Source: Mytilus californianus
Lineage: Eukaryota
DNA length: 64,000 bases
Reading direction: 5' to 3'
NCBI RefSeq assembly: GCF_021869535.1
Contig: NW_026262668.1
Location: 58,962,001 to 59,026,000 of the forward strand
The notes beneath the pieces were generated by a model that worked only from the letters and a program-made list of their open reading frames with translations, searched no databases and had not been told where the DNA came from. The position numbers and the translations under genes are program-made. Shown one piece after another: positions 9,301 through 37,290 of the stretch (the first letter of the stretch is position 1; every line of letters begins with the position of its first letter).

Positions 9301-12300
9301 GTAACAGTAAACATATATTTCTTCTTTAATCATAGGCAGCCACAATAATTGGACTAATGACCCGACACATGTCATCTTCAGTTTTTACAAGTGTAGCATC
9401 AAAAGGGCATGGCGTCGGTGTATTTACTGATCCAGAGAAAATTACGGTGTTTCCTGAATTTAATTACCTGAAGTCTCCCGCTGGATGTAGTAAGTTTGTA
9501 TCCATCATGGATATACAATATATACATTGTGATTTTCCGTTACATATTGTAATCAATTCGAATACTTAAAATCTAAATTGAACTGTTGAAATATGTTGTA
9601 TTGTATAAGCTTTTCAATATTTAAATTACAGCGATTTTGGAGAACTTTCTGCTTTTGGCCCTGGACAGGGGAAATTTACTCTAGTTCTTGTAGGAAAACA
9701 TAAAGCAAATCCGAGCATCTTTTGTAGTATATCATATGTTAAAGTTTACAACTTAAGTTAATTTTGGAAAACAATTATTCAAAGCTGTTGAATTTTTACC
9801 TTAAAACACGCTGTTTACTTACTGGTAGGTAGTACTGGTTTGAAACAAGAAAGAGCTTAGAATTCTTATTTTGACCGCGGTTAATTTATCAGTACTATTA
9901 ATGATCAAGTTCTTTCAATGTATTACAGGTTTATAGTTACACTGTTACACAAATAAGCAACTTCGATTATAAAGCTTGAAATATTTCTTAACCAAATAAA
10001 GCATGGAAATTGGCTTGAAATAATATTGGAAGACCTTAACTCATGATTAATATTATCAGTTTTGTATACAATTTTGAATACTAGTAGCTTGTTTTGGTAT
10101 AATTTGATTACTTTATCTGTCTTGTGGCACTACCGACCTATAATGTTATGATTTCTATCGTCTATTTAGTCGCTTGTTCTTTTTTCTTGTCATTGTTTTT
10201 TTTTTTATTTTGCTGGGTACAGTGTGCTATAACGTCCTTATGAAAAGTTTGGCATTCATTGGAATTTTCTTAATTTAAGGTCTTGAAATGATGAGTTGCC
10301 TTTTTCATTATTTCTTCTTTGTACTTTTAGTTTTGTGTGTACATTGTTCTAGTTATTTGTAGAGCTGAACAAATCCATTGTCTAAGAAAAGTTTGCATTC
10401 TGTTTGAAGTAGTTTATCCTTTTTAACTGCTACATTGTATTTAAAACTATTAAAACAATCTTCATTTTTATATTGAAGGTCACTCGTGTTCTGGTTCCGT
10501 TTGTTCAAAATCGTGTTACAGTGACGGAAGAAAATACGAAGATATGCACGGTCTTACAAACAGTATATCGGGTATTGTTGACGATAACATTTTGTGCAAT
10601 TCACACGACCCACATCACGGTCTAGAGAATATTTTGGTGCACGAATTTGCACATCAAGTATATAACTACATGCCATCAAGTGATAGAAACAAGGTAATAC
10701 TATATGTTATTAAATGATATGAGCAAATCAGCCCTAATACGGATAAATCAGCATGTGCAATACTGATGACGTTGCCCTGTTAATATAAAGCATGAGTTGA
10801 TATTGCTTTTCAGACCGGTCCAATACGGGAAAAGCCGTATTGGCCCATGGGCTAATACGGGACGTTCACTTCCGGTTTCATTTATTTAGCAGTATTGGTC
10901 CATGGGATAATACGAGACGTTCACTTCCGGTTTTATTTTTTTACGCCTTACTTAACTTTGGACGTATTGTTATTCATAAGATACATTTTCATATTATGTA
11001 ATTTTGAATTACATTAAAAAAAAGTTTAAATAATGTTCCGTGTTTTGTAACGATCTGAAACGGCCTTTTGGAGAAAAACTTTCGATTATTATCACTGTTT
11101 AATTTCCGTTGATTAATCATCAGAACGCAGATGATTCAAGAGTAAGAATGGGTAAACTGTCTAAATTATTATTTCTAGCTTCTTTATACTTTCTAGATAA
11201 AATGAATTGAAATAACAAATATTAAGTACTTGGACGAGAAATCGGAAATTTCATAATGTATCGTAATAGCGAAAAGACAAGTTCAGATATGAATTCCTAT
11301 ATTTTTTTCCGGTAAGTTTCTTGGTTTAATCGAAGAATTTAATGACATCATTTAATAAAAGTGTTATGAACTGGCTGTTTCTGTATTGACCCTGTTATAG
11401 ATTCTCGATCAGCTGTATTGGCCCTCGACTCTACGAGTCTCGTGGCCAATACTGCTAACCTCGAATCTATAACAGGGCCAATACAGAAACAGTCATTTAA
11501 TAACACTATATTATAGGTTTCAGTATATAATATACATGTATATCGTATTTAAAAATAATAAGATAACAATGCATTTATGATGCAAGATTGGAAACATCAT
11601 ACCAGACTGGCTTAAACTTGTTTCCTTGCAAAACAATTCTTTTACGAAAGTTATCAGTAAACTAAACACTGAGCTAAAATTAAGTGAAATAAGATATGGA
11701 TCGTTATTGCGACCTTATGGGGATCTTTGGTAGGTGATTTTTCCAGGATACGGTCACATACTTTTATATCAAACTTACTCGTAAAAGACAATTTTCCTGG
11801 AATAATCTGCAAAAGGTACAAATGAACACATGAGAACAAATTAAAGTAGAAGAAGCCAAAATTTTTGATCGCTTAAAACGAAAAGGGCTAACACAGAACG
11901 ATAAAACTACCCTTATAAGGTCAACATAGTTATGACCTATTAAGTTATAGTACAATACATTTTATATTAACCTAACTGAAAACTAAGAGACATAAAATAT
12001 TATTTAAGTCATATCAGTATAGAAGCGTTGATTTCTGTGTTGACACTCAAGTAAGAGGTGGTCGGCCAGCAGCGGTGCCGACTAAGGGGTAGAAATAAAA
12101 CACGTGTTTTTGGCATAACCTTCATCCGTTATGCTCAAAACTAATATTTTAGAAGAAGAAAAATGAAATGTTGAACAATATATCAATCAGTAAATATATA
12201 AACATGTATAACGTAAGTATCAAAATCAGAATATTATTTATGATTGAAGGTTTTTATTATTAATATTTCTGTAGGTGAAATATATCTATAATCAAGACAA

Positions 12301-13169
12301 GCAACATCATACATGGCATGACCATACTTATGCTACCTCAAATTCAAGAGAGTTTTGGGCAGAAGCTTCTGCAAGTTTCTTTCGTGTATCCATACGACCA
12401 AGGACGACAAGTGCAACTGGTGGATTGAATATGTAAATTCTCAATTTAATTATTGTTTATATTTGCTCATATGGCCCACCATCATCTCCCAAACTTTCCA
12501 CATTTATTTTATGAATCGAATTTTACACTGTAACGCTAAACGGATTATTAACATTATATTCCTTACTTGTGTATGTCAACTTCTTTCTGGCTACTGTTAA
12601 TGTAACTCTTTAAAACCGGTGTTAGTGTGAAAACATATGTGAATCAATAAGAAATATTACGAAAGTATAAACATAAAGTGTTAACCTGGATAAATTATAA
12701 TTGTAAACTGTTTAATTAACAGTATAGCTCTTCTTATTACTTTCAATACTAATAATCGCAATAATTGTTACATGTACACCTTAAATCTTGGCGTGGCTTT
12801 TTGTAAAAGGTTAAGCTATTGAGAAAATTATATCTTGATAAAACAGTACATAGCTGTAATGTGGATATCGATGCTCATTTCATGGTAAAAGTCAATTTTA
12901 TACGCATATTTTCATTGAAATATCATTGCCATATCAGAATTATGTGTTGTTTTTGCATATTCAAGTTCAAAGGTTATTTCTAATATGATTTAAATTTTCT
13001 TTAATCAAGCTGTTTCTTTTTTAGCTGCGATTTTAACCATGTATGTAGAACCGAGCAGGAAAACAGGGAATGGATTAAAAAGCATGACCCAACTTTATAC
13101 AACTTATTAGCAAAAATTTACACGAACAATCGACCTTCAGTTCTCAGTGGATTAAAAGTGTGTCAATAA
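2447..13169 (+). CDS. Secreted zinc metallopeptidase-like protein (HEXXH...E; anthrax lethal factor / Pro-Pro endopeptidase-like), 7 coding exons, 315 aa
   Basis: Manually assembled exons 2447-2489, 3845-3887, 7185-7374, 9336-9489, 10479-10693, 12275-12432, 13025-13169. All introns are GT-AG, phases 1,2,0,1,0,2 join in frame, total 948 nt with no internal stop. N-terminus MIAYTCFLVTFLFLGTHG looks like a signal peptide. Motifs: ENILVHEFAH (HEFAH at 10640-10654), YATSNSREFWAEAS, C-terminal HDPTLYNLL. The TAA stop overlaps an AATAAA (13165-13170). Confidence 0.9.
3340..3680 (+). mobile_element. Retrozyme-like repeat monomer (~350 bp) ending in a mutated type I hammerhead
   Basis: Shares the CTGGGTCGATGC..CTGCT.GTGGA block with other copies in the window (17340-17390, 19150-19220, 57140-57200). 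It ends in GTCA-CTAATGA-GTCT-TTTGT-AGAT-GAAA-C-GCGC-G-TC-TGGC (3611-3653). Confidence 0.7.
4649..6416 (-). mobile_element. Non-autonomous Helentron-associated element (HINE/DINE-1-like) carrying an internal satellite
   Basis: Perfect 17-bp subterminal inverted repeats AAGTCTCCCAAACGAAG (4683-4699) and CTTCGTTTGGGAGACTT (6398-6414). The right copy is part of a hairpin. There is a terminal stem-loop GTAACAG-GATG-CTGTTAC (4664-4681), a (GAGGAA)n/(AAT)n microsatellite near 6315-6366 and an internal tandem array. This order matches HINE architecture read on the minus strand. Confidence 0.8.
4790..6040. repeat. 134-bp tandem satellite, 9 full copies plus a partial, two alternating variants
   Basis: The CTAACC anchor recurs at 4801, 4935, 5069, 5203, 5337, 5471, 5605, 5739, 5873 and 6007, an exact 134-bp period. 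Confidence 0.95.
8012..9200. mobile_element. MITE with long (~130 bp) terminal inverted repeats, TAG...CTA ends
   Basis: The left end TAGTCCACCAGCTAGGTCCAATATATTTGCATAATTGAT... matches the reverse complement of the right end ...ATCAATTATGCAAATATATTGGACTTAGCTGCTGGACTA. Homology continues to GATATGGAGCCACGAAAAA. It lies in intron 3 of the metallopeptidase gene. Confidence 0.8.
10700..11506 (+). mobile_element. Non-autonomous element ending in a 146-bp palindrome
   Basis: The left end TTATTAAATGA is the inverted repeat of TCATTTAATAA, which occurs just before and near the end of the palindrome at 11361-11506. There is an internal duplication of GTATTGG.CCATGGG.TAATACG.GACGTTCACTTCCGGTTT. Confidence 0.6.
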
Positions 13170-13424
13170 AAATTAAAAGGGTCACAGATATTTTTACTGA
13201 AATTTGTAAGACTTATAAGCTAAGAACTAATACATTCAGAAGTTTATACATGGCTGTACAACATTACCAAAGATTTGGTGTATAGATATTTCAACAGACA
13301 GTCGGTCATCCAATTGGTACTTATTGTGCATCTCTACTGGCCTAATTATTTTTTTATTCATATGAAGCATGCATAACCTTCTCAAAGACAAAAAGAAAAA
13401 AAGCATCAAGCAAAGTTCATTAAT

Positions 13425-14130
13425 TTCACTTTCAGATATATTGATGATGTTCTGTCACTCAATAACCAACATTTCAGTGAGTGCAAGTATCTTATATATC
13501 ACAGTTTAAGATTAAGAATACTACTTATACAAGAAGATCTGCTTCAAATCTTGATCTTTTTCTCGATACTGATGCAGATGGACGACCTAAAACTAGACTC
13601 TATGACAAAGTTGATGAATTCAACTTTCAAATTGTCAACTTCCCATTTTCACTTGTGACGTACCATATGACCCATCGTATGGCGTTTACATATCTCAATT
13701 AATACGCTACGCTCGTGCAGGTTCACACTATACGGACTTCATTCACAGGGGTGTGCTACTTACACAACAAATGAAACAACATAGTTATGAGGCAAAACGA
13801 CTGAAATCAACATTACATAATTTCTTTTGTCACATTCACGAATTGGCTGACCGATACGATGTGTTTGTATCTCATCTCACTAGAAACATGTTTTCGCTCT
13901 GTTTGGTCTTTAGAAACCAGAATAAATTTTGATCTGTCATTTAACGGATTTTTTCCTATTCCCAATTGTGACATTATGACTGACAGTACGCATAGCAGGA
14001 GATATTTGGCTTGTCGATGCACCCTGTATCGCTTCTCCTGGAGTTCATGTAGTACCCTAAGTTTTTGTTTGTTACCTTGATTCGTATTTTCTGAATCGAT
14101 TTATGAGATTTCAACATCGGTTAACTACTA
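13425..14130 (+). mobile_element. Penelope-like element reverse transcriptase remnant
   Basis: Frameshifted translation from 13431: FRYIDDVLSLNN...IKNTTYTRRSASNLDLFLDTDADGRPKTRLYDKVDEFNFQIVNFPF...YGVYISQLIRYARA, typical of the PLE RT C-terminal half. Confidence 0.85.
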
Positions 14131-14280
14131 CATTAACGGTAAGCGATGTCATGTCAGAGCAATAGTCGTAAATGAATTATAATCAACTATATAAGGTATA
14201 GCGAACATACCCATCAATATGGTTTGATAATGGTTTTGATAATTCTAATATGAATATATTCCATGACTAACTATGATGAA

Positions 14281-14375
14281 AGGGCCTCGGTGGTTGAGCT
14301 GTCTAAGAAGTTCATCTACAGTAATCTCTAGCCTGTCGACACTAATAGTGTCAGTTAGAACACCGCTCGTGGCGA
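14281..14375 (+). mobile_element. Degenerate tRNA-derived SINE head
   Basis: GGGCCTCGGTGGTTGAGCTGTCTAAG...GTTAGAACACC has A-box-like and B-box-like remnants but does not fold into a cloverleaf. Confidence 0.4.
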
Positions 14376-16649
14376 AAAGCTGTGGATTTTTTTTGGAAAT
14401 TATTAATTTCACTTTCAATTATTTACACTAACAACTTTATAATTACTTTCTGATCTTTAACTTTGTATTTGATTTGGCTTTCTAACAATTTTGATTCGAG
14501 CGCCAACGATGAGTCCTACGTAGGCGAAACGCTCTACTTGCATAACAAACTATAAGACTGGTATTTTTGGTGTGTTTTTTTTAACAAAGACCAGAACAAC
14601 ATTGATTTTAATAATTAAAGTTCCTCTAATAAATCACCCAAAATGATAGCAAATACAGAAATTATATAAAGCACTACACATGTTATAAAGCAATGAAGTT
14701 ATGAAGGATTTTCATATACTGCGAACAAGATGAAGCACTGTGCAAACATGTCGGTACCTGTATTTAATATATTAATTATTGTATCCATCACTTTGCATCT
14801 GCGTCTTTTGGTGGATGAGCTCACACTGCTGGGTACTGAATCCTGATGAATTCTTTGTCTTAAAGTCGGGAAATATTGTAATTGTCAGCTTTTCCAATGT
14901 CTTCAAAAGGCGTCTTTCGTCGGATACAAGGTAATAAGTTGCAAATAAAAACGTTAACCACAGGAAGACGGTGCTTGTAGCATTGTTAATTGCTGTTTAG
15001 TAGTAGATAGAATCTGTCTGATTACAATTTTTCTTGGTGTTGTTGAGGCAGGTACATGCTCATGGAGAAGAAGCGTTTGCAGATGACCTCTTATTTTCAT
15101 GGCAGTTAAGTAAACACTTGATAGTCAAATATACATAAAAACATCTAGAATGGACTAGTTTATAGCAGTAGTTAGCCATCATCTATCTTGTCACTTCATT
15201 CTTTGATAGATGGTTGTGTTGTGGACTGAATTTGACTAGGTCACCCTCCGTGGTTGCCTATCTTTAATGTTAAAAATTCTTCTTTTTTTAAAATTTGAAC
15301 ACATTTGAAAAATATGTAATTACTAAATTGAACAATAAATTGAGAGGAAAACAGTAACTTCTAAGTTACATTTTTTAAATTTAAATCTACAGGTAACATG
15401 CATTTACTTTTAATAGAAGTCATATTTTACTTACATTTTTCAAATTTAGTTAAAGATAATCTTGTCAAAAATAATGTATATTTCTGTATAATGTTCGTCA
15501 ACATAATGCATTTTCCTTGCAAACGTGCTAGGGCTGTTCCAGAAATATACAAGGGTAGGGGTCGTGATAGAAAAGCACATTTTATTTAACCCCTCGCAGC
15601 ATGACATTTTAATTGATTTTTCTATCATTGTTCAGGCTCTTTTTCTAAAATATTGTCACCACCCTTCAAATATTAAATCACAGTGCAAGCGACCCCTTTA
15701 AACAACTTGTGCAACATTGATTGTCAAAACCATACAATTTTCCTTAATTCAGTGGTGTAATGAAGTATTCTTTGTGAGATCTTACAATATATAAATATGA
15801 CTACAATTCAGAACTAAACTTTTATTTAACAACACACCTTTTGTTTTATATATATAAGTAATTATAATGGACAAACCAGGATGACACCGACTTTTATCAA
15901 CAAATGTATTTTTTTCCATGTTTTAGTAGGTCATTTTAATATTCAATAGCTAGAATATGTAACTTTGCTGTATTCTGCAAAATGAAAAGAAATAAAAAAA
16001 ATAAAAAAATGAGCCCAACTGTTGTTTGTAAATTGTTGGATAAACTTGAATCAAATATTTCAAGTGTCATAGAAACTTAAATAAACCTACCGATTATGAT
16101 TAATAGCTTTATATCATACAGTGTACACAGTAAAGGTTCTGTAAAAGACATAGACTATAAGAAGATAGCAATGGAGCAATTGAAAGTCATTAGTCGGAGA
16201 AATACACGACCAGAGAAAAAGTAGAATAGACAACAAAACAATAACAGTCCAAAATGTACAACATACAAAACAAAAGAGAAACATATAATACCCACGTAAA
16301 ACTGAATGTAAACTTAGATGCTCCGAAAAGCAGTTTGTTTTTCTCGTAAGTTGCACCCGTTCATTTCATTAAAAGTAAGTACAAATCATGTGATCAGTTC
16401 CATTGGTGTTGTCATGTTAGAGGAACTGAAAAGTAGTCATCAACGACAAAAATAATCTAAACAGTCAACAAAAACATATTGGAGTCCATAAAACTTCAGA
16501 AGATAAGAATAACAGTAGATAAAAAGAGTTGGTTTCAGTATTACCAGTTTATTACTATTGATTCAAAAGCTACATATTAAGCAGTAACTCTTTATCAAGG
16601 AAATCATGATAGGAAACGCAACTCTTGGAAAAAGGGGAATTATATACTT

Positions 16650-16890
16650 CTGATGCAGTTGCTACACATACCAAAGATCCGGAATTGGCAAATTAAAAAA
16701 AAAATCTGTTGCCGTCAGGTGAAATCTAATTCGAACATTACTGTTAAATTTTATAGGCAAGACAATGTATGAAACAGACCTAACTGTATGTATAGTATCC
16801 TTTATTTCAAGTTTAACAGAAAATATGCGATCAATATATTCACCAAACTTTGAATTCTGACATTTTAATTTCATTTTTTCCTGACTTTAT
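16650..16890 (-). mobile_element. Penelope-like RT remnant
   Basis: ORF 16662..16874 contains NSKFGEYIDRIFSVKLEIKDTIHTVRSVSY, the same RT block as 13425-14130. Confidence 0.65.
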
Positions 16891-17159
16891 CAACACATTC
16901 AGTGTTTTTAAACGTTTTAAATGTTTTGATATAACGTTTTATTATTAGAATATGTAATATTGCTGACATCTCGCCCTTGACCTTTGACCTTACTTGGTGG
17001 AAATAGCACCGTACGAATTTTTGTTATACCCCTGATAAGTATGATATGCTTTAAATTGTTAATGGTTTAGCCGTGAGTTAGATGGTTATGTTTTTAATTT
17101 CAATTATAACTATATAAAAAACTCGTTAATATCATAAGACTCGTCATGGACTCTCAAAT

Positions 17160-17560
17160 AAAGACAGTTGGAAGGCGAAATCAAAAACGAAGATTAAGAG
17201 CGTTGAAAACCAAAAAATACCAAAGCATCGTGGCAAATACAGCCAAGGCTATGTATGCTTGGGGGTAGAAAACGGTAGTGTTTCGAAAAAATCATATTTT
17301 TTAAACGAATGTACACAAAATTACCGTATCAATGGTAATTCTTGTCAACACAGACGTACCGACAACTGGGCTGGTGATACCTTCGAGAACGACTCGTAAG
17401 TAATTTACAGACAATTACACTCAATTGAAATCTAGAATGAGGTTTGTTTAAATAAACTCATCAAAGATTAAAATTAAAATTTTGTATGTCAGGCGCTCGT
17501 TTTGTCTACAAAAGACACTTCGGTGACGCTCGAATCAAAAACGTTGAATAGGCGAAATAA
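17160..17560 (-). mobile_element. Degenerate retrozyme-like repeat copy
   Basis: Contains the family block CTGGGCTGGTGATACC and a decayed hammerhead at ~17489-17529 (minus strand GTCA-CCGAAGT-GTCT-TTTGT-AGAC-AAAA). Confidence 0.55.
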
Positions 17561-19420: not shown

Positions 19421-21776
19421 TCATCACGTATATTTATTCTAGGCTCAAATCTAATGTTATTTGAATTCGGATGTCAAACTATCTATCCTCAAGTGGTTTG
19501 TCACTGTCATTTAATCCGGAATTTTTGTGAACGAAACCGATATTGTTGTCATATCGGATTTACAAAATCGTACCATATTGCAAAGATCCTATAAGGCTGA
19601 ACTATTAAAACAAAAAACAAAATGAAATGAAATTTCATTTACATACATTTAACAAATCTTTTCCGAAAATTTAAAATATACTATACTGATCATGATGGAC
19701 ACTTTTGTATCAAATCAATCTATTCAATCCTATATTGCTATACAAAATATAAGCAGAGACTTCCAAATCAATATTAAAACGGTATGAAACAATTATCGTA
19801 GTGACTATTAATAAGAAATGATTATTGTAAAATATTGATTACGTTTTTCGTGAGATGCAAGGTCCTTGTGAATTGAAACCATGCAAGTATTTTTTTTCAT
19901 TCACTACAGTTTGAATTTAAGATATTAATTTATGTGTGTGCATCCCTGATAATTGGTGGTCACATGTTGCATATAATTTTCATAATATTTTCACTATTAA
20001 AACCTGTGAAACATAATATAACATTATTAATAATTTGAATAAATATTCCCTTGATCTGATAGTATCTTTTAATGAAATTAAATATTTTTAACAGAAATAT
20101 CGTTTAGTTTTAATTCTCTTTTCTTTCCAACATTTGGTTACATATGTTGCATATGCCTCTACAAAACATCACTGGCTTAACGTTCAGAAATAATCAGTTT
20201 AATCTTGGACATAATATATTGTCAGTTTACTATTCCCATGTTTTTCCTCAGATGCACAATAGCACGTTGTATTAAATACTCCATACACAACGCGTACAGT
20301 GACCGTCTCAAAACATAAATTATATAATTGCTTTATCATTATACGTGATATTTGATAAACATTCACATCAAAACTCATATGTTCTGTCAAATGGCAAAAA
20401 GGTTGGAATTTATAAATGATTTTTTTCTGCAATCTAGTCTTTACTGCTTTACTTTCCAATCTATAACGAACTTTGATTGTTGAAATATACAATGTCACGT
20501 GATAGCCTATACATAGAGGGACCGTATTAAAAAGATAGAAAACTATCTGTATAAACAATCGAATATTTTCGAGGCATTCCGAGAATCTTGTTTCCGAGGA
20601 TATCTGAATGGCCCATATAAGCTTCCAAAACTCACCAATATATAGGCCTTGACGGGTTCACGCAAAAATCATGAGTACTGTTGTTTGTCTAATTGTTATA
20701 AATAAAACAGGGAGGAATATAATTATAAAAACATATTGAGTTTAGTTTTGAATATTGTAAACGGTATATAATGGTACATAAATGGAACATTTCTTAAAAA
20801 AGAATTGAAAAGAGGGCAAATGTGTAGGTAAAATAGCATTTAAAACTTGTTAACCTACGAGGCAATGTTTTTTATGGAACAGTGACTGTTGATATATGAA
20901 GCAAAAGAAATAAAAAAAAAAGTAAAAAACATTTACATCCCTTTTACTAATCATGTTAACATTTAAAGTGGGCTAATATCAAATAGGAAAATAACAAAAA
21001 TATCGAACTCCAAGGAAAATTCAGAACGGAAAGTCCCTTATCAAATGTCAAAATCAAAAGCTCAAACACATCAAACGAATGGATAACAACAGTCATGTTC
21101 CTGACTTGGTACAGGCATTTCCTCACGTAAAAAACGGTGGATCAAACCTGGCCCTATAGCTAGCTAAACCTCTCTCTTGTATGCCAGTCGCATACAATTC
21201 TATTATATTGACAACAATGTGTGATCAAACCCAACAGACATAATAGGTTAAAATGTCAAAAATAGGGGTACAGCAGTCAACATTGTGTTATAATCTTAAT
21301 CACTATAAAAACAAACAAATATGTCAAAAAAGAAAAACAAAATGGCACATAGACAAAGCACATAAGCAAATTTAAAATGAAAGACAAGAATACAAAAAAT
21401 GACCATTGCACAATAACACGCCAAAAAGATATTACCAAAAATGGACTAAACAGTAAAGGTTAATAATTTACAAAGACAAATAAAAGAACACTATAACACG
21501 TAATTAAGATGATAAACAACGTCAGTACCTAGAATCTATACTTCAAGACCATCATGTATTATTTGTGAAGTTGATACGGAATATTTATCAACTAGGTCTT
21601 GGTATCTTCCGATGAATTTTGTTTAGCAAAAGGTCGAGACGTTCTTTGACATAACCCTGGTTCATCAACTTTCAGCTCAGACACTGGTGACTTTTTATAA
21701 AAAAATCATTATTACAATGAGAGGCTAATTTTGTTATGTCACTCGAAGATTTGAATATGTTCTTAATTGGTCAGAC

Positions 21777-21859
21777 AATACTTGGTCATGTTTTAGGAAC
21801 ATTTAAAACCCTCGGCTACGCCTCGGGCTTTCAATATTCATAAAACATGACCAAGTATT
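21777..21859 (+). repeat. 83-bp palindrome with TC/TC apex
   Basis: 35-bp arms with 4 mismatches around CCC-TC-GGC-TAC-GCC-TC-GGG. Confidence 0.85.
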
Positions 21860-24210
21860 ATATAACCTATAAGTATAGTTGCTTTATTGTGTATATTAAA
21901 TAGGATGAAACAGGGAGCCATACGTCTATTTTCCAAAACCAATTTTTGTTGTTATACCACTTTTTCAGTGGAATGCTTTTATTTTTCTTAAATTTGAACA
22001 TTTGACATCGTTCTGCATTCTTTGCACATTTTTCCCTGAGAGTTCGCGATGAAGGTTAGCATTTTGAATACAGCAAACTTTGTAACTAACTTTTACTACT
22101 GTCTGTAATGTGCTTGTCAGTAATCTCTTGTCTGTTGTTTTCGTATTTCATATCTTTCTGTATTTCGGGATACATTGTTGTGAGTTGAAGATCTTGCATT
22201 GTTTCCTTTAAATCTATCTACACCTGTTATATCGTGGATGATTTTCAGCTTGATATATTGTTTATGTATATACACCTGTCAATTATTGAAGACTGTATGT
22301 TGCCATCTAGATGCTTTTGGAAATATTTGTCGCTGTGTTGTTGTTTCATTGAAGTATATTCCACATCATTTTATTCGTACATCTGCTTTAATTATTGCAG
22401 ATCACATCAATTGCGGCAAAAAGTTTCATTGACTACACTTGATGAAGCTTATAGTCGTCACAGTTTAATATCAGTCTAGTATAAAACATGCTTCTATGTT
22501 ATGTTCAATTGAAGATGATGCATTTTTGTCAATTAAATAATATCAGATTATTACATGGCATTTTTCATATCAGATGTATTATCAGCCCTCGAGCCGAAGA
22601 TATGAAAAATGACATGTTATGATCTTTTTATCATATGCTTCAACAATGGAGAAAGATAACAGTTTACTATATTGATCCTTTTAAGTGGTTCTCAGGTAGA
22701 AGTTCAAAAAGTGAAAAGTTTACGGACGACAGAGGCCAAATGTAAATATCCGATATGAAATCTTTCTATCATATGCCTCAACAGAGGAGAAAAACAACAG
22801 TATAATATAGTTTTATATTGACGGTAAAAAAATCAACAAAACATAATGAACATTGTTTGGAAAAGTCAATATTTGTAAAGTAACTTGCTAAATTATGCTG
22901 GAAAGTTTGAAAAATGCATTTATTATATCATTTATTTTGCATTTTACATATTATATTTTCCTGTCTCCGAATATTTGTTTTGTACCCTCCTTTGTTATGT
23001 TTTTCACTGAAAACGTACCATTGAGGTGTATTTTCCGGAATTTGCCTGGTAATGTCGGAATGCCATGCGATAACGTTACGGAAAGGCATGCGATAATAGC
23101 CGGAAGCAGTTGATAATTTTTTCATACAGCCCGCTAAGCACCATTTCGGAAAATATGAAATTCACGTAAATTTAATGCTATTATCATACTTTAAAAATTA
23201 TAAGTTATTTACTCTAAGTAAATGATAAATAATGATACATCGTTACATAATATAATGTAATCATCTAAGTACTTTATAATGTAAATTAAGGATAATGTAC
23301 CCTTTTGTTGTTTCAATGCTAAACATATGAAAATTTTATAAAATTTCAACAGCCTTTCCCCTTGTACTCGTTATTTGACAATTCGGTGCTAAATAGAAAG
23401 AGGATTATTGCATGCAGTGCTAGCAATGATTTCCCTAAAAACAAGTATCTAAATAAAGATATTGGTTAAAACAGGTATAAAAACAGACTTATTCAAGTAC
23501 AGCTTCTACTCGACTGTAGTGGATCAACACGAGGTTTTTTGGATGGTAAAGGTTGTTTAGGATTTTTTGTCGAAAATAAACGCTAGCACATCATGGACTA
23601 ACAAATGAGTAATCTATGTTTACAATTACAATTAACGAAAATCTCTGTAATGAAGTCAGCGGTTTTTTTGCCAAAAAATTGGCTTTATTAGCCACCAAAT
23701 CCCCATTTTCTATTAAATGCAATGAAATAGTTAGTAGAATTGCTTCGAACAACGTTTCCTTTTAGTATGTGTACAAAATGGCACGCCACTTTTATACTAA
23801 AATTTTATAGTTTTGATATTGTAGCACTTAGGACTACAGAAGGGGTCATAAACTTTCAGCATTACATTTCTTTTATATACATTATCCAAATTTAAAGATA
23901 TTATCGCTATCTTTCTTGATCTGAAAGTATGAATTTTATGTTTAAGAATTTCACGTTTCACTTAATGCTGTTAAAATCAACGTGTAGATGGTAAGCTATA
24001 TTTGTTTGCTTGACAAACATTTGCTCAGGTCAAATAACACACAAAACATAATTTATGTCACAAGAAGGAATAATCCTACGTTCAAGGTTGCGTACTAAAC
24101 TGGAGGTACATATCATTCATTATATGTATGATTTTATATACATGTATCTATTGCATATTCAAATGTAAATATATTTCGAAGGAAAAATATCAATGTATGT
24201 ACATATGTAG

Positions 24211-28300: not shown

Positions 28301-31300
28301 TCAAAATGTGCAAGGGTGATAGTTTTTATCGCAAGTTTTACCAGTGTAGTAGATGTTTGAATTATTTGAGACAGCTACATCATTACAATTAGTGTTTTTC
28401 TCCTAAACAAGTTTAACGACCGTCAATACGATAAACGTACTAAGTTGAAGTGCACCAATATCCTCGAAAAATTGTGTTAAATCCTTACATGTATACTCAA
28501 CCCAAACATTTGTTATTTTTCTTTCAAGTTCAAATTTGATTGCAACCCAAGGATTCCGAACATGTGTACCGCCCATGAAAAGTGAAATCGACATATTGTT
28601 TATACAGGTTACGAAAGCAGTTACTACAACACGGTTAATCGAAGCGTAAACAAAGGAAAAAAAAATCAAACGGTCCAATCACATTCAAGTATTTGTAAAT
28701 ATGCAAATCATATCAAAACTATCTAGCTATAACGGGTATAGGGATTTTTAGGAAGAAAGATAACGAGTATAGCAGGGTTAAACATGATTGTTTTTAAGCG
28801 ATTCCATGTTAACTTGTTAACTACGTATAGTCATTTTTACTTTTGTTATTATTGTATGTGGGTTTTTTGCTTCGCATTGAGTTTTAAATTTTGAAATAAG
28901 GTTAAAAGTCCGGTGTACCCTGTCTGTCTAATATGTACACCTTTCAACTATCATATATACCAAATACGGCTGACCACTTTCTTGTAATAACTAAAAACTA
29001 AAAAAATATTTTGCCCCCCCCCCCCCCCCCCCCCCAAAAATGACTACTAGTGCAAATGTATATGGTTTTTAAATGGGTTATTGAACCAGGGAAATAAGGT
29101 CAATGTGTTAATATCATTTGCCAGACGGATACATCAGAACAAAGGACATCTGTATACAATATATAGAGTATTCAGCCCTTTTTCATTTCTGAAATAGAAA
29201 GCATAGTATATAAAACAAATATTTTGCGCCGAACGCCACCATGTCTTTCTATTTCGCATTCGGTGACATCCGGCGAAAGTGAGACACAAACTTTATTTTC
29301 TATGAGACTATGGAGAACAATGACTGTCATTTAATTTGATTACGTCTACTTACCCACATTTTGTCTAACTTCCCTGTCATGATAGCTGGACCTAAATTTC
29401 TAGCCGGGTTCATACAACCTCCAGATATATTCCACTGAAAAAAAGATATCAACAAGGTGTAGGACAAGATGATGTTTTGAATTCCATATTATTCAAGTTT
29501 TTCATTTATAAACTTCCAACAATATTACAAAAAAAGTCAGATTAGCAGTTTGTTTTAATGACAAGAGGATATCATGCCTGCTCTATGCAGATGATCGTTT
29601 TTTGTTTATCAGAAACTTAGACAGAACGGCAATGCAATCTTTATATTTCATATAACTATTGCAATTGGTGCTGTCTAGAAGTAAACTCAAATATAACAAA
29701 AATAATTGTTTTCGTAAAAAAATAGAAGATTTGGGAAGGAAAATACAGACTGTATAAAGCAATATCAATTCTTGGGTCTTATTATTGAAATGCTATGAAA
29801 ATTAAATGAGGCTAGAAAACAGTTTTTAAAAAGAACAAGTTTGAAAGCCTGAATTGAGCTTTAAAGAAACCTGAATTCTTCAAGCTTAAGCACAAATGGA
29901 TTTCTACATTTATTTGATCATTGTATCAACCTATTATCCTTTAAGATTGCGAGAACTGGGTGTTATTGATATTACTCCAAACAGAAAATCATTATCTTTA
30001 TTTAATATATTCAAGGACTTGGAAAAGACTCAACTTCAAATTTTGTAAATATATACTTGGGGTCTCTAAACTATGCACTAACATAGGAGTTATAACAGAA
30101 ATTTGAAGATATCCTCTTTACATAGTTATGTGGAAACTAGTCTTCATGTATTGGCACATAGTAGAAAATTCATCAACAAACTTGTTGAATAATACATACG
30201 AGGAATATGTTATTTTGCATGTAAGCATAAACAAGGGCCATTACTCCTAGTAATTAAACATTGATCTGGCTAATTGTAATTGTAAACCTAACGATTTGTT
30301 TACGAGTTCCATAGCATAAGTCGATAATTGACGAAGGGTTAAGTACCGTAACCTTACACATTAATATACTGTAATAGCATTGTACTAAAACAAATATTAA
30401 GACAACTCTCCGTCAAACATTTTTGTGTGTACGAAACGCCGTATGTTACGTAAGTTTCCAACCCCGAATTTTGGGACAGTGTCGCGCTTTCTGCACGAAT
30501 AAATTTAATATAAAATTGAGAATGGAAATGGGGAATGTGTCAAAGAGACAACAACCCGACCATAGATACTCTACACAATGATTCGTAAGTTGTATCTAGC
30601 AAGGCAAAACGTCTAACTCTATTTAACATGATCTAATTTTCACGTACATTCTAAATTACGATGACGGTCCAAAATCACGTGAAAATCGCCTTTCTTAGGA
30701 AGACTGGAAACACACCTTTTCTTGATCTCCATAGGCATGCTTCGTGAAACAAAGGGCGCACAATTTTATAACGCAAGAATTCAATTACTTAAAGGAAATG
30801 ATTCAACATTTGAAATTTTTAAAATTCTTCTTCTCTTATTTAAAAATACAATGTTTTCCATAACACAGTATAGTTCGGTGTGAGCCGATGCTCCGTGTTG
30901 AAGGCCGTACCTTGACCTATAATGGTTTACTTTTATAAATTGTTACTTGGATGGAGAGTTGTCTCATTGGCACTCCTACCACATCTTCCTATATCTATAT
31001 AGTAACAATTAATCCTGTGTTCGCCTTAAAATGATACCTTGACTGAAATAATATTGATCGAAAAGCATTTCGTCGTGTGAATCTTATAGTGTTATATGTC
31101 CGTTTTTGATAAAAATGGAGATATCTATATTTTTGATATCCAAGTGCAATGGTCTATCTCCCTATACAACTATAATACAAGATTTCTACACCCTACACGT
31201 TTTTGTCAGAACTACATTGTTCTATCTCCACATTCCCATTTGCTTATTCATCAAGTTAGTTCAGATAAAAATATTTTTATAGTGTTGTATCTCCACTATT

Positions 31301-34300
31301 TTTCGGGTATTTTTGCTGTAAAATAATTATCAACATCATCTGAGTAGTACTATGCTTAGATTGTTTGCGTGGTTAAAACTCAATCTATGAGCAAATTCTT
31401 AGCAAATTCAGCAGTCCAAAATTGGGATTATTACACAGTTAAAAAATCCATGGTATATCTCCTGTAGAAATATAGGGATAAATTTCTAAAACAACATTGT
31501 TTGTAATGAAATGTTCTATCTCCAGTAAAGGGAAAGTTTTATTTATCGAAGTTGCTTGTCTATTTAAAAAACAATCGAACAAAAAGTTACTCTTCATGTA
31601 CGTAAATTCAATTCCTATATATCTTTTTTATGCCTCAGTCAAATATTTAAGATATTGCCCTTTTAAACTTTAATTTAAATTCTTACCACTATTACCCAAT
31701 GGGAAATGCATAATTATTGGATTCACACGACGATTTGTAAAACTGTCACGACTAACATTATTTCATCTTCTTAACAAGTTAGTGGTACATGACGTGTATT
31801 ATACACTTACATACATGTAGCTACCTTCTTCCTTGTATAGTCATTAAGATAGACAAGATTTAAAACAACATGTCATTATAAACTCTAAACATGGAGATTT
31901 CAAATATTTAAGTTCTACCTAGTTGGATACACATATAGGTACAAATTACGTTCAATACATTGCATTACACTCTCACTATCGAATGTAAAGTATTTCGTCC
32001 TTTCTTTTTGTTCAACTAATCAAGATTAATTTTTTTCAATAGAGACAAGAAGAATGACATACTTTTTTTAAAACAAATGATGACCTCTGTGTCTAAAAAT
32101 GTATGATACTATCCAGTATCAGGTATACGTCAACACACCAGCAAAGTAAATTAAAATATATGATATAGGGGTAATATAAATGCGACGTGAAAATGGTGCC
32201 CCAATCCATCAGCTTTGAACAGTTCACGAATATGATTAAACAGAGATTTAACATTTCAAATGTGAACACATAATAAACAGATACGTCGATCATCTCTGGC
32301 ATGGGAATCAATACTAAGTCAGGACAGGTACAAGACAATGTCAGGACAGGTACAAGACAATGTCAGGACAGGTACAAAACAATGTCAGGACAGGTACAAG
32401 ACAATGTCTAGTAATTCATATACTTTAAAGTATTTTCATCCCCTTATTAAGTTGTCTTTTTTGTAAATGTTACTCCACCACAACTTGGTTGACTGTAGTA
32501 GAATACATGTACCATAAAATGTCACCGATATGTAAGTTTTATTTTTAGTTATCGCAATCCCCCTTTTCTCTTCTGAGCTATGTTTGGATTTTTCCATATT
32601 TAGAATCAAACGTTTGCAAAGGAAAATTCATGACGTAACTTTTGGCTTTTAAAATCGAAAATGATAAACTAATTAATGAAACCTTCAGATGTTCTTCAGA
32701 CAACTCTCTGCCAGATATCAATAATGATTTATGTATAGGGTGTTCTTAATATTAGCGTAGGGCTTCAAACTTCTTCTACTTAAAGCGAATCAACGAAAAA
32801 CTATCAAAATTACCTAATTTTAGTGTGTTTGTTTCCCGTCCATTTGCAAATATTTCATGTACATTGAAGTCGGATACAAATTAAACAATAATTCCTTTTA
32901 AAGGTTTTTAAAATGGGTCGATCTGGTTGAAGGGCGGGTTTGACTGCTGGTGGAAAAAAATGGATTTTACCACTATACAAGTCATTGTGGAAAAGGAGAA
33001 TATGTCGGGAAGCTACAGAAACTTTTCCTTGCAAAAGGTAACTTACGGACACCCGAACCGTCTATTACAAGGGTTCTTTTGTGTGCAGAGAGCGTGACAC
33101 TCTCCTTAAACCGGACGTTGCTGCGTATTTATGCTCTCACATATACTAACAGACTACCACTCACATGGGTCTTACTTCCGAACGGGATCGACCCACGTGA
33201 CCAGATTTCCATACCCAAGTTAACCCTTTGGGCAACCTTATCATTTTTGAGATATTCACAATATCATTAACATCCGAACAACTGTAACAATTCTAACCAA
33301 AAAGGTATTGCCACAATCTGTCTTCAACAAAGCAGTTGATGGGTGTTATTTTCTGAGGTAAGTCCGTTGCTTATATTTTAGCTGTATATATTAACTTCAA
33401 TAATTTTTTTTCTAATATATTGGCAAGTATATAATGACTTCATTTTTTCGAAGTAGAACCTACTCCCGAGTTCATTAGCCTTCCATGATTGTAATTGGGG
33501 TTCATATTACTCAATCAAAATCCACTTTTTAATGAAATTCATGTTACTCTGTTTTATTCCTTTGTGTGTCAAGGTTAAATTTCTTATGGGTATCCTCTTT
33601 TCTTATATATTTTTCCCAATTCTTTTGAGACGACTTTGGTTTAACAGATATCATGTTCTTGTTTTGACATCGTCATTTCTACCTTGTATACGATAGTATA
33701 TATTTGAACTGCTATTCAAATTAAAAAAGCATTGCTACATGTAAAAAAAAGTCAGACAAGGAATGAACAATGTGAATACCTACCCCACATAACACGTTAA
33801 TCGACACAAGTAGACCAATCATCAATGGAGCGAACCCATGTACATCATCTCTCCCTTCATCGATCATTGCAAACGTTCCAAAAAGCATCATGAACGTTAT
33901 TATCATCTCACAAACAATGGCTTGTCCGTCACTTATGTGTGGATTTGGGAGAATAACGCCAAAACCTCCACGTATGTGTTCATCTGTGATCGCATAAATA
34001 ATTCCAGCGCCTGATACTGCACCTAATGTTTGACAAATTACGTATAGAACAAATCTTACTGTTGAAATTTGACCGGTGACAAAAAATCCCATTGAAATTG
34101 AAGGATTGACATGCCCACCACTAACCTTACTGAAAATAGTTATTGCCACTGCTATGTAGAAGCCAGTTTCGAGTGCAACATGCACACTAGAAACTGGTTT
34201 AAAGTCCCCGCTAAGTATATTGCATCCAACACCGTAAAATGCTAGCATGAAAACACCAATGAACTCGGCAGCACATGCCCGATACAGGGAAGGCGATTTA

Positions 34301-34362
34301 ATATCTTCTATTTCTCGCCTCAGGTATTCCCGCCAAAATGTGTCCGTTTTATTTTTGGCCAT
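25374..34362 (-). CDS. Aquaporin (MIP family, AQP8-like SGGCMNPAR signature), 3 coding exons, 307 aa
   Basis: Exons 34362-33784 (193 codons; AEFIG, SGGHVNPS), 29434-29354 (WNISGGCMNPARNLGPAIMTGKLDKMW) and 25637-25374 (LYWIGDLVGATAGALLYD...stop). Both introns are phase 0 and GT-AG. Exons 1 and 3 match ORF-track entries 33721..34362 and 25374..25682. Confidence 0.95.
26630..28115. repeat. 45-bp minisatellite array containing a 713-bp higher-order duplication
   Basis: Unit GAGACGTATACAGTCAGTAGAAAATACAAAGA(AAT/GGT)(G/T)TGTGCTCCT. Variant order from ~26640 is repeated 713 bp later (ORF starts 26678 and 27391). It lies in aquaporin intron 2. Confidence 0.95.
29445..30200 (+). mobile_element. Non-LTR (LINE, CR1/L2-like) reverse transcriptase remnant
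   Basis: Degenerate translation QQGVGQDDVLNSILF...NDKRISCLLYADD (TATGCAGATGAT at 29584-29595)...WCLEVN..TKIIVF...QFCKYILG. It is antisense within aquaporin intron 1. Confidence 0.75.
32318..32408. repeat. 22-bp tandem repeat x4
   Basis: GTCAGGACAGGTACAAGACAAT repeated four times with one substitution. Confidence 0.95.
33050..33235 (-). mobile_element. SINE-like fragment
   Basis: CAAGGGTTCTT...GAGAGCGTGACACTCTC...CCGGACGT..CTGCGTA..TA.TTCCGAACGGG resembles a widespread bivalve SINE body I recall. It partly overlaps in sequence with 51442-51720. Confidence 0.5.
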
Positions 34363-35855
34363 CGTAAAATAGAATGTTCAATTATCTTTCATGTATGTAA
34401 TTATAATACATACTTTCATAAACTGGTGAATAGCGTGTCAATTTTACACAATGGAATAAGTTACAATGATAGTCCTTTTATGCAGTACAGATTATAATCA
34501 AAAATTATCTTTCAAATTACTCACAACATATATATCCATTATTGTAACCATAAAATATTATGCGAATATATCATTACTATGAACTAGTATACAATTTTGG
34601 ATATCAATCCAAGCAGAAACGATGTAAAATTCGTTTCGCGACATTTAACACATGTATATGAAATACACAAATCTAAATTTGATGATGTCGCTTCAGTCAT
34701 CCAGTTCCTAAATGAATATCTCGAACACAATGATTCTGGTTGTCACCGACATAGTTTCCGTTATATATTTTTATATTGTTTACATCATATTTTCTTATTA
34801 AAAAACAATATTCCAAACATAAATAAAGTACGTTCAAGAAGCATAACAAGTTTTACAGTTAAATTCGAATTCGCCAAACTCAAGCGAATATAAATTATTT
34901 AATAAATAAAACAACACATGAATAGGATAAGTGTGCCTACAATTAAATATCCTTCATACTAAAATCCTTCACTATACATTCAGGCAAGCACTACTAATCC
35001 CAGCATATAATTTAATACAGTTAATACCCACATTAACAATATTCAACTCTGAAAGGGTTGGTAAACATAATAACGAACTGCTGCTACGTAAACTATAGGC
35101 AAACTTCGAATAACTTTAATTTTTCAAACGAAACCCTTAAGTAATACTTAATCATGCTTTTCATGAATCTCATGAGCTGCATATACCCGTAAAAGGCATT
35201 GCCATCCAATCATAACTAAAATAAACACTAACCATGTGCTAAGTATAAATACAAACACGTGTTTAAAGTGAACAATCACTTGACCGTTACCACATCATGT
35301 GACCAATAACTTTAATAAATATATTTATATTCTAATTCGCTAAGTTCAAACGAATATAAATTATTTAATAAATAATACATGTACAACACATGCAAAGGAT
35401 AGGTGTGCCTACAGGTGTAGCAGCCTTTCGAAAGACAAAGAAAGCCAAGCAGATCTGAACAAAAATAATTGATATAAAAATTAAATTCCCAAACATTTAG
35501 AAACTGTCAATTTTTCTTTAATATTTTCTTTGAAATAGCCGTCTTTAGCTTAATCCAGGAACATATATAATGTTAGATATACTGTTCCCATCTTAATCTG
35601 AAGCCCATCTACCATGCTTCTTTCATATTCTATCATGAATGCAAGCTGTTGCAGCCGCAGTAGCTCAACCTGATCTCAGGCTATGTAATCCAAATTTAGA
35701 GTTAGACTTATATAAATAAGCCGATTGATTCCAGAGCTGATAATATAATTTCTCTAACTCTAGTATATGACAAAGGTTTAAGATCATCTAGTTTTTTTTA
35801 CATAAAATACATATACTAGTACCTAAATATATAATCTGAAAATTATACATCTTTA

Positions 35856-36532
35856 TTATACTTCATGTCAAAATGCCAGATTTTGATTGGTTAATACGAG
35901 GGAGACAATTTACTTTATTATACCTTACATATATTTCAAACAATTCTATTGGGTAAAACGTTATCACGTGACATGGAATAATTCAGTTAATTTTCATTCA
36001 ATTGCAAGGAAGAACGAATAACCCTAAAAATTTACACCAGCGTGGAATAACCCTATTATTCACCGGCGAATAACCTTTTTAGTTTGTTGATTTGTACCCA
36101 TGAAAATGACGTCACAGACGTAAATAAACAAAATGGCAACGTTCAAGTTACAGGAAGTCTATTGATCGAGAGAAGAGAAAATAAGGCTTTTGACGTGAAT
36201 CTTGTGCCGATGAAATCTCTAATAACGGTCCTTTTCAGGGCCATCAATATTTTACAAAAAGAATCTACCTTTGTTGTACAAATTATATGTATTTTTGAAC
36301 GTCAACTTGTGTTTGTTACTGACTCAAGTAAGGGTAAGTGCTTTTACAATGATTCAAAATGCCCTTCCACTGTTAGTTCGGTATAATAAAACAATTGTGG
36401 CCCCTTAGAAGCGATGAATATCCAAAATTGTCAAACCTTAAAAGTTATTTCACTTCGGGCTGCGCCCTCAGTGAAATAACATTCTCGTATTGACAATTTT
36501 GGATATTCACCTTTTCAACGGGCCATAATTGT
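35856..36532 (+). mobile_element. Non-autonomous element ending in a 142-bp palindrome, inserted in the Ngaro recombinase gene
   Basis: The body is bounded by TTATAC...GTATAA and followed by a palindrome at 36391-36532 with apex CACT-TC-GGGC-TGC-GCCC-TC-AGTG. Confidence 0.6.
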
Positions 36533-36760
36533 ATGCTATCCCATGGCAAATACTCTATTACCCTTCACGTAGACGCTTGCTCAAGTTTGCGCTTTAATAG
36601 ATATGGATGATTGTTATGGCAAGACGTCATAGTTTATTACTTTGAATTTAAAATTTAATAGACAGTAATAACAGAACATTCGCCTCAGTTGACAATGTTT
36701 TCTCGGGGTAACAATCTGCTCTATCACCCTCTCAGATATGTGATATTTATATAATATTAT

Positions 36761-37290
36761 ACAAATATAGCCTTTGTATGAGGTCGATACAAGGATATAT
36801 TGACCTGAAAGAAGTATATTGACTGAGGACGAAGTCCGAGGTCGATATACTTCTTTGGGTCGATATATCCTGTATCGACCTCATACAAAGGCTATATTTG
36901 TTATATTATTAATTTTCGACCATATTTGTATCAAAATCGACATTTGATTTTGTTGGAATTTTATAGATATTATATTGTCTCCTTGACAATAACAACATAT
37001 TAGTTGTTATTTCATTTACTTTTTTTTTTGTTTGTTTGACATCTTATGTATTTGAAAAAATTTTTGTCAAATAATCGATCACAGATGTCATTTGTTTCAA
37101 AACGTTGAACAATATCCTGAAATTCATTACATGACGTCACAAAGTATATCGGTTTTTAGATATTCTAAAAATAACCGTGCAATATGCTTTTTGCTATCCG
37201 CCGTTTTCTCTCTACCTTCGAAAATATAGTTTAACATGTGACTGTCCTTAAACGAATCAAATTTGTTAAAATATACGAATTAATAATATT
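36761..37290 (-). mobile_element. Non-autonomous element ending in a 141-bp palindrome (opposite orientation)
   Basis: Palindrome at 36761-36901 whose minus-strand apex is GACC-TC-GGAC-TTC-GTCC-TC-AGTC. The body is bounded by ATATTATTAA (~36903) and TTAATAATAT (~37280). Confidence 0.6.

Follow-up and report, generated by a model that had tools for sequence, protein, structure and literature searches.

Why should four long palindromes whose arms have nothing in common carry the same apex? The question is raised by a stretch of 64,000 nucleotides of the Mytilus californianus genome (contig NW_026262668.1, positions 58,962,001 to 59,026,000, forward strand), which was analysed as a whole and is called the window below. 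A sequence-only reading of it had noticed that four of its palindromes share an internal TC/TC loop, a short GC-rich stem and a T-N-C triloop, and had taken this tip for a structured DNA signal read by one mobilising enzyme across several non-autonomous transposon families, with a Crypton-type tyrosine recombinase or an HUH nuclease as candidates. We found that each palindrome is the 3′ end of a dispersed high-copy repeat (F1 to F4) in this 1.65-Gb genome. Taken together, our results make it probable that the four palindromes are the right-end hairpins of non-autonomous Crypton-like (DUF3504-type) families, with the tip acting as a cap that drives folding.

Direct reading of the letters returned the four apex sites exactly as they had been given: TC-GACTC-TAC-GAGTC-TC at 11425-11441 (F1, plus strand), TC-GGC-TAC-GCC-TC at 21812-21824 (F2, plus), TC-GGGC-TGC-GCCC-TC at 36455-36469 (F3, plus) and TC-GGAC-TTC-GTCC-TC at 36825-36839 (F4, minus). 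A half site comprising loop, 3′ stem and TC (TTCGCCTC) is likewise present at 36679-36686 on the plus strand. When both strands of the window were scanned with a regular expression for TC-stem-TNC-stem′-TC, requiring perfectly paired stems of 3-6 bp, this strict motif was matched six times, compared with 0.62 ± 0.76 matches expected from 100 first-order Markov resamplings. Two of the six have AT-only stems and lack a flanking palindrome. The other four are GC-rich and form the centres of the inverted repeats I1, I2, I3 and I7, which include the three longest of the window, with arms of 64, 59, 51 and ~75 nt (gapped). Since the G+C content of the window is 31-35%, the excess of GC-rich stems is larger still. 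Homology of the four arms would have reduced the shared apex to simple descent, as the sequence-only reading had pointed out; F1 to F4 showed no mutual similarity in blastn searches at word size 7, and the palindromes do belong, as it had supposed, to several non-autonomous families that are high in copy number and mutually unalignable. On the TC strand the element body lies 5′ of the palindrome in all four cases, and not in three of four as originally counted. Two further palindromes of the window are devoid of a strict tip: one at 22545-22625, whose 27-nt loop holds CCCTCGAGCCGAA and may represent a decayed tip, and one at 61533-61606 with an AT-rich centre. A full-text search of the literature for the tip sequences gave chance matches only.

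Comparison of genomic copies yielded sharp element ends. As lower bounds from a first look at the genome, there are at least 715 candidates for F1, at least 672 for F2, at least 1424 for F3 and at least 2712 for F4. F1, a non-autonomous element of 808 bp, occupies 10707-11514 on the plus strand, its ends being set by comparison with copies L002-L012; it begins with the left repeat TTATTAAATGAT (10707-10718), carries internal ~55-bp tandem repeats (~10830-10950), and finishes with the right repeat (11347-11358), the palindrome (11360-11507) and a tail to 11514, all on the plus strand. F2 (21708-21872, plus) is a 5′-truncated copy of a family that measures ~962 bp at full length (L016:704-1665), where the left repeat TTAGAACATACTC is found; its right repeat lies at ~21753-21766 and its palindrome at 21766-21870, both plus. 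F3 (35915-36535, plus, 621 bp) has its left repeat TTATTATACC at 35915-35924, its right repeat GGTATAATAA at 36380-36389 and its palindrome at 36391-36532, followed by a tail at 36533-36535, again on the plus strand. F4 runs on the minus strand from 37291 to 36754 (~538 bp, copies 95-99% identical), with the left repeat, TATTATTAATT-CG, within 37276-37291, the right repeat at 36904-36918 and the palindrome at ~36752-36911. The layout is common to all four families: a 10-15 nt repeat starting at the first base (usually with TTAT), the body, an inverted copy of the repeat directly upstream of an imperfect palindrome of 100-180 nt, and a short TTAT-like tail. In a blind test for such repeat pairs, the TC strand of F1, F3, F4 and of two further families, F6 and F12, gave a positive result and the opposite strand a negative one. 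TTAT stands at both termini of F1, of F6/L085 (see below) and of the M. edulis element L084, and is less clear in F2 and F3.

A possible reason why such a tip is kept appears on the complementary strand. There, the T-N-C loop closed by C...G becomes C-GNA-G and the TC/TC loop becomes GA/GA in a Y-GA-R context, and the whole tip reads Y-GA-R, GC stem, GNA or GNNA loop closed by C-G, Y-GA-R. The F1 tip, for example, gives C-GTA-G with its C-G closing pair and CGAG flanks. A GNA or GNNA loop with a 5′-C...G-3′ closing pair was found on this strand in 12 of 14 family tips, and half of the 14 correspond exactly to the mini-hairpin consensus GCGNAGC or GCGNNAGC. The cores include GCGAAGC (three families), GCGCAGC (two), GCGTAGC and GCGAAAGC, as well as CCGAAGG, CCGTAGG, ACGAAGT, TCGTAGA and CCGGAGT. 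Mini-hairpin DNA is defined by the sequences GCGNAGC and GCGNNAGC; GCGAAGC and GCGAAAGC have a melting temperature of 76.5 °C and withstand nucleases as well as 7 M urea, whereas the melting temperature of GCTTTTGC is 33 °C and GCGTTTGC has no transition at all (PMC13037366). For their stability, d(GNA) loops rely on being closed by a C-G pair (PMC3201870). In the second motif, the CGAG block, two CGAG tetramers oppose each other, and a C:G pair is followed by two sheared G:A pairs, which stack across the strands, and by a G:C pair (PMC10085684). By the match of its letters to these two motifs, the tip is predicted to hold a GNA mini-hairpin and a GC clamp with a CGAG block stacked on them, all on the strand opposite the TC reading. 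From this match it follows that the GA strand should fold far better than the TC strand, which at the same positions would have pyrimidine mismatches and a weak TNC loop.

Three properties of the hairpins bear on this strand difference. TC/TC is the only recurrent 2x2 internal loop in them, being observed 12 times together with four near variants, also at varying positions of the arms. With plain nearest-neighbour DNA parameters, which give no bonus for these motifs, the GA strand was the more stable in 15 of 16 families, and palindromes of other kinds had no consistent strand stability bias. Finally, among the transition-type imperfections of 18 hairpins, G·T wobbles were counted 40 times on the GA strand (C·A mismatches on the TC strand) and 12 times on the TC strand (binomial p = 1.3e-4), a count made on single copies and not on consensus sequences, in which two hairpins come from one family and the set is not fully independent. 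It had been proposed that the tip is read; it may instead act through the unusual stability that it has on the complementary strand.

To see how far the tip extends beyond F1 to F4, long palindromes were located by minus-strand self-blastn; the census covers ~330 kb of M. californianus DNA (the window, flanks and Helitron loci) and eight loci from other assemblies. The motif or a close variant was present in about half of some two dozen untargeted long palindromes of the ~330 kb. These include F5 (TC-GCC-TAC-GGC-TC), F6 and a decayed tip (TC-GCAC-TCC-GGGC-TC), along with variants: the loop is AGA in two palindromes and GA in another, one has a GC stem and TAC loop but lacks TC, and one carries a pair of TC/TC blocks in its arms. 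Across families, 13 of 14 stems pair perfectly while representing eight different stems; when the 3′ stem halves were shuffled among families, a mean of 2.35 were complementary and none of 20000 shuffles reached 13. The claim that structure and not sequence is conserved was hence borne out. Some letters are near-fixed nonetheless: the stem begins with G and ends with C, the flanks are Y-TC and TC-R, and YTCRG occurs as two direct copies that frame the stem. Part of the foot of the hairpin is conserved as well, with GTTAY...RTAAC followed by T-rich/A-rich letters in F1, F5, F6, L083, L084, L087 and an Ostrea copy, and it may be the true binding or cleavage site.

An enzyme could be assigned to F6, a tip-bearing sister family from a flank in this genome (L044). 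The genome contains at least 580 DUF3504 candidates. In the translation of one recombinase fragment, L079, the H-x-x-R motif and the tyrosine region ...LAIYQR are visible, and a protein search with it led to annotated Mytilus proteins and their loci. At the M. coruscus locus L081, the left repeat TTATCCCCGG at 4304 is followed by three open reading frame (ORF) pieces, the right repeat CCGGGGATAA, and a 142-nt palindrome with the tip TC-GGC-TGC-GCC-TC and a tail ending in TTATA. The ORF pieces have a weak QRICH1-like match, a DUF3504 match just under the Pfam cut-off (27.7 versus 29.7 bits) and a catalytic C-terminus; on the related locus L080, Pfam Phage_integrase scores above its cut-off. The M. 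edulis locus L085 has the same ends as L081 around a single uninterrupted ORF of 429 aa, with no Rep or reverse transcriptase ORF inside the element; the tip of the two is TC-GGC-T(G/T)C-GCC-TC. F6 aligns to L081 only over the first 136 nt (93%) and the last 574 nt (86%), and by this alignment it is best described as an internal-deletion derivative of the 2.2-kb recombinase element. A genome search with the L085 element recovered six full-length copies at 94% identity, of which five coincide with open frames of 474 aa and the sixth has a frame with one stop, in addition to dozens of deletion copies matching only 1-135 and 1564-2183. The alignment and the full-length copies indicate that at least one tip-bearing family has a tyrosine-recombinase partner in the M. 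californianus genome.

The same kind of tip caps recombinase elements of three Mytilus species and of Pinctada. The M. edulis element L084 (repeat TTATCTTACC) has the tip TC-GAGC-TTC-GCTC-TC, L083 of Pinctada imbricata has TC-GGCC-TTC-GGCC-TC, L087 of M. galloprovincialis has a 15-nt repeat pair and TC-GGGC-TTTC-GCCC-TC, and L080 of M. galloprovincialis has GGCC-TAC-GGCC-TC, the 5′ half of the internal loop being lost. Recombinases adjoining the motif are ~40-50% identical to one another, which makes the notion of one mobilising enzyme too narrow. In L087 (2990-5418) the recombinase gene is antisense to the orientation set by the repeat pair and the palindrome, so that the ends do not dictate the direction of the gene. 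No informative palindrome was obtained from the scallop locus L086 or from the Ostrea locus L088. In an alignment of L084:6296-6478, L083:5944-6120 and L082:5905-6096, mean column identity was 74% over the whole non-coding palindrome. Such a value for Mytilus edulis, Pinctada imbricata and Ostrea edulis implies that the palindrome either is under strong constraint or has passed horizontally from one bivalve order to another.

How the ends are joined could be seen directly for F3. In four sequencing runs with the same species label, contigs pass straight from 35914 to 36536, the host repeat in its other copies serving as a paralogous empty site, and this joint defines the F3 insertion as 35915-36535 without target duplication. 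The target lies between ...TTTACT and CTATCC..., the insertion having taken place between T and C; in other copies it is compatible with A|T or T|T, the ends being T/A-rich. In two sequencing runs we also found a back-joint from 36534 to 35915 with one A, that is, a head-to-tail junction. Head-to-tail tandem F3 copies exist in the assembly (L032-L034) and explain the back-joint equally well as an excised circle.

The repeat into which F3 is inserted covers ~35800-35914 and 36536-36753 and adjoins the 3′ end of F4; it is very abundant, its contigs adding up to a depth of 10-100 times the values for F3 and F4. It carries a half tip TTCGCCTCAG and a CTCGG block, and its 3′ end (...GATATTTATAT) meets the 3′ end of F4 tail to tail. 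The host repeat may itself be a Crypton derivative that has lost the left arm of its palindrome. Elements are often found at or inside one another's ends (copies L026, L030, L016, L047 and L032-L034): an inverted F3 lies within the palindrome of another F3, an F3 end falls exactly at the start of an F5 palindrome, the 5′ part of a second F2 follows F2 after 20 bp, two F4 copies stand tail to tail, and F3 forms tandems. This end-to-end nesting fits integration by recombination with a resident end. Contig depth rises to ~1 million from 37476-37600 onward, at the start of a ~538-nt satellite ~200 bp beyond the 5′ end of F4.

Once joined, the ends read right repeat, 1-4 nt, palindrome, TTAT-like tail, left repeat; this was seen directly for F3, and for the other families the order follows from their defined ends. 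In a circle or a head-to-tail tandem, the short repeats would pair at the foot of the hairpin, beside the crossover, and with the palindrome folded out the two repeats would become neighbours, ~4-8 nt apart. Recombination sites of tyrosine recombinases typically comprise two inverted arms of 11-13 bp separated by a spacer of 6-8 bp (PMC3212892). The long palindrome would then be an extrudable insert within the recombination site. The cap would nucleate and lock the intrastrand folding of one strand, or cruciform extrusion, in a fast and stable manner, and folding would bring together the two recombinase-binding repeats and the TTAT crossover, by analogy with the folded integron attC and CTX sites of bacterial tyrosine recombinases. 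On such a model the arms could drift freely provided that they pair, and the tip would be kept. An extrudable insert is the reading that fits best the drifting arms, the fixed cap, the strand asymmetry and the position of the crossover. We infer from the shared architecture and tip that F1 to F4 use such tyrosine recombinases; folding of the GA strand would be needed for recombination. A stronger proposal is that the substrate which bivalve Cryptons recombine is a single strand in its folded form or a cruciform after extrusion, with the CGAG block and GNA cap as a strand-selective folding trigger. It is put forward tentatively, as a possibility to which we give less than even weight; the recombination of one folded strand, as at attC, has indirect support from the strand-biased G·T wobbles and from the strand asymmetry of the non-canonical motifs.

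Several observations weigh against the interpretation of the palindromes as capped Crypton-like ends. An autonomous partner of F1, F2, F3 or F4 was not found among the loci examined; the Crypton candidate of the sequence-only reading thus stands for F6, and the assignment of the other four is based on shared architecture and tip. A tyrosine recombinase as sole enzyme was found for F6 alone. The families resemble Cryptons in the absence of target duplication and in their short (4-6 bp) terminal direct repeats, but they have terminal inverted repeats, namely asymmetric pairs of 10-15 nt in F1-F4, F6, L084, L083 and L087, and for this reason we rate the elements as a variant of Crypton and not as an ordinary member. 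Published accounts give Cryptons terminal direct repeats of 4-6 bp, without long direct repeats or terminal inverted repeats (Kojima and Jurka 2011, PMC3212892; Glomhopper 2026, PMC13465315), and the words palindrome and hairpin are absent from both; measured against these accounts, the family name is stretched here. The two families with an AGA loop have GNA on neither strand, and the palindrome L040 combines a GC stem and TAC loop with no TC/TC loop at the tip stem. The G·T excess, apart from the limits of the count given above, could be due to deamination of a single-stranded intermediate and not to selection for pairing. As regards strand specificity, the TC reading is on the top strand in 10 of 10 Mytilus and Pinctada families, so that orientation is not random and the claim holds for all orientable families of these two genera, but it fails for one Ostrea edulis copy. 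The palindrome of this copy, L082, aligns over its full length with L084 and L083, and its right repeat and tail fix the top strand, on which the tip reads inverted as GA-GGC-GAA-GCC-GA. We looked for a left repeat in L082 and did not find one, and the copy may be dead; alternatively, a fixed strand orientation may not be essential.

The layout of F1 to F4 recalls that of another class of transposons, and we considered whether they are non-autonomous Helentrons (Helitron2; HLE2, HINE), rolling-circle transposons in which a Rep/helicase would read the palindrome as a 3′ terminator hairpin that has become overgrown. As in HLE2 elements, a 5′ terminal repeat returns as an inverted copy ahead of a 3′ stem-loop, the target is not duplicated, tandem repeats lie in the centre of F1, and copies occur in head-to-tail tandems; short terminal inverted repeats with a stem-loop after the right one belong to the published layout of HLE2 ends. 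HLE2 enzymes are also abundant, with at least 126 Helitron_like_N and at least 110 DUF6570 matches in the genome, some in open frames of 2400-2700 aa with PIF1 or Exo_endo_phos. DUF6570 lies ~1 kb upstream of nearly all Rep loci in the genome. The only partner found with identical termini, however, that of F6, is a tyrosine recombinase without Rep/helicase, and a search for a Rep/helicase partner (with DUF6570) on the 3′ sides of 16 Helitron_like_N loci gave none. The tip motif, strict or relaxed, was absent from the first 4-5 kb downstream of the nine Rep/helicase genes that were scanned, and seven further Rep/helicase loci, screened for long palindromes only, had no TC-type tip. Two young autonomous HLE2 families, whose copies are 98-99% identical, have different ends. 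The Helentron family C165/C13 (Exo_endo_phos; L061:1150-1566 compared with L062) ends at L061:~1566 in ...TTGTCAT with a hairpin of 7-bp stem and CATC loop, and C99/C88 (L075:4941-5240 compared with L077) ends at L075:5240 in ...TTGATTAA with a 5-bp hairpin; both 3′ ends lack the tip and any long palindrome. A palindrome with the tip, found 1.2 kb farther on from the C99 element, is not part of it. A long palindrome after the C143 gene (L059) was considered as the end of the C143 element and discarded, as it starts where the similarity of the copies stops and no matching 5′ repeat was found. The window copy of F3 is inserted between T and C and not between T and T; other copies are compatible with A|T or T|T. 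We therefore dropped the Helentron/HINE identity of F1-F4, since no Rep/helicase partner was found at the loci examined, the two HLE2 ends that were defined differ and F6 has a recombinase as its partner; we hold it to be very improbable and take the common layout as a convergent resemblance. The HUH nuclease suggested by the sequence-only reading loses its footing on the same evidence, the F6 partner and the short, different hairpins at the two autonomous Helitron-like 3′ ends.

Other explanations accept the tip as part of the element and differ in what it is for. It might be a sequence- or shape-specific protein binding site, for a DNA-binding part of the recombinase or a host factor, in duplex or hairpin form, the thermodynamic oddity being incidental. 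We regard this as unlikely. In its favour are the near-fixed letters that exceed what pairing requires (G...C of the stem, Y-TC/TC-R flanks), the direct copies of YTCRG and the retention of the motif beside recombinases only 40-50% identical. Still, stem length (3-5 bp), stem sequence and the middle base of the loop vary freely, the fixed letters are exactly those needed by the mini-hairpin and the CGAG block, TC/TC blocks also occur at variable positions of the arms, and the G·T strand bias spans the whole hairpin, beyond the tip. It seems to us quite unlikely that hairpin and cap lie outside the recombination site and chiefly signal priming, or synthesis of the second strand, on a single-stranded intermediate. 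Phage G4 and plasmid ssi origins do bear mini-hairpins, mini-hairpins exclude single-stranded DNA-binding protein (PMC13037366), and the G·T bias would suit a strand that spends time single-stranded; against this, every family has its palindrome placed exactly between the right repeat and the end of the element, both repeats flank it after end-joining, as in a recombination site, and current models of tyrosine-recombinase transposition need no replication origin. Least credible of all is that the shared tip reflects chance or common descent, the arms of one ancestral palindrome having changed more rapidly than its centre. Descent does account for some of the sharing, as mussel, pearl oyster and flat oyster palindromes of a single recombinase lineage can be aligned in full, yet F1-F4 are unalignable even at word size 7, their stems differ by compensatory changes, and a neutral 15-nt centre would not outlast 60-nt arms; nor is chance adequate, as the 0.62 matches expected per window hold for any stem, with far fewer for GC stems centred in palindromes.

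If the right-end hairpins of these Crypton-like families work as proposed, several consequences follow. Crypton movement has so far been inferred by analogy, the ends having been described as featureless and the DNA substrate being undefined, and for many families in several bivalve genera a candidate substrate can now be defined, in which a pair of repeats is combined with a long hairpin and its precise cap. Two non-canonical DNA motifs that have been measured well, and that stabilise one strand only, are matched by the cap, which leads to concrete predictions, and material for tests is provided by thousands of copies per family, some families with 98-99% identity and open recombinase genes. 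Were the folded-strand mechanism true, it would be the first eukaryotic counterpart of the hairpin recombination of integron attC and CTX-type sites, and Hirao's mini-hairpin would have a use in nature, as a signal of transposons. For annotators, such elements mimic the Helentron/HINE architecture and can be misfiled.

In comparison with known systems, the mussel families are like CryptonA/DUF3504-type Cryptons in being small elements whose sole enzyme, where the partner is known (F6), is a tyrosine recombinase with a DUF3504/QRICH1-like region, its homologues being annotated in bivalves as KCTD1/ZMYM2/QRICH1-like; they are also like Cryptons in having no target-site duplication and, in several families, a short TTAT direct repeat at both termini. 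Unlike published Cryptons, they have asymmetric inverted repeats of 10-15 nt, a capped terminal palindrome of 100-180 nt and very abundant non-autonomous derivatives. With Helitron2/Helentron (HLE2) and HINE/DINE-1 elements they share the asymmetric terminal inverted repeats, the 3′ stem-loop after the right repeat, the lack of target duplication, the central tandem repeats and the tandem copies, but they depart from them in having a recombinase as partner (of F6) and a stem-loop 10-20 times longer, and the HLE2 ends of this genome are short, different hairpins.

Among hairpin-based systems, the integron attC site (bottom strand) and the attP site of CTX phage are folded single-strand sites of bacterial tyrosine recombinases; in attC the tip is variable and the stem contains extrahelical bases. 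The mussel ends would be analogous to attC and CTX sites in that an imperfect palindrome drifts in sequence while its structure stays, repeats are brought together by intrastrand pairing, and asymmetric unpaired or non-canonical positions may set the choice of strand. They differ from attC in that the tip is the conserved part and the host is eukaryotic. Parvoviruses, including adeno-associated virus (AAV), use an HUH nickase and rolling-hairpin replication and have terminal hairpins with a mismatched bubble. As at parvovirus/AAV ends, a long terminal palindrome has its orientation marked by a small asymmetry, and a flipped version exists (the Ostrea copy); unlike there, all copies seen within the mussel families keep one orientation. 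Mini-hairpin and CGAG motifs are known from oligonucleotides, from origins of phages and plasmids, and from a human promoter; here their sequences cap transposon-end hairpins. What is new with respect to all these systems is a cap common to unrelated families and genera, its identity with the mini-hairpin and the CGAG block on the complementary strand, and the accompanying strand bias.

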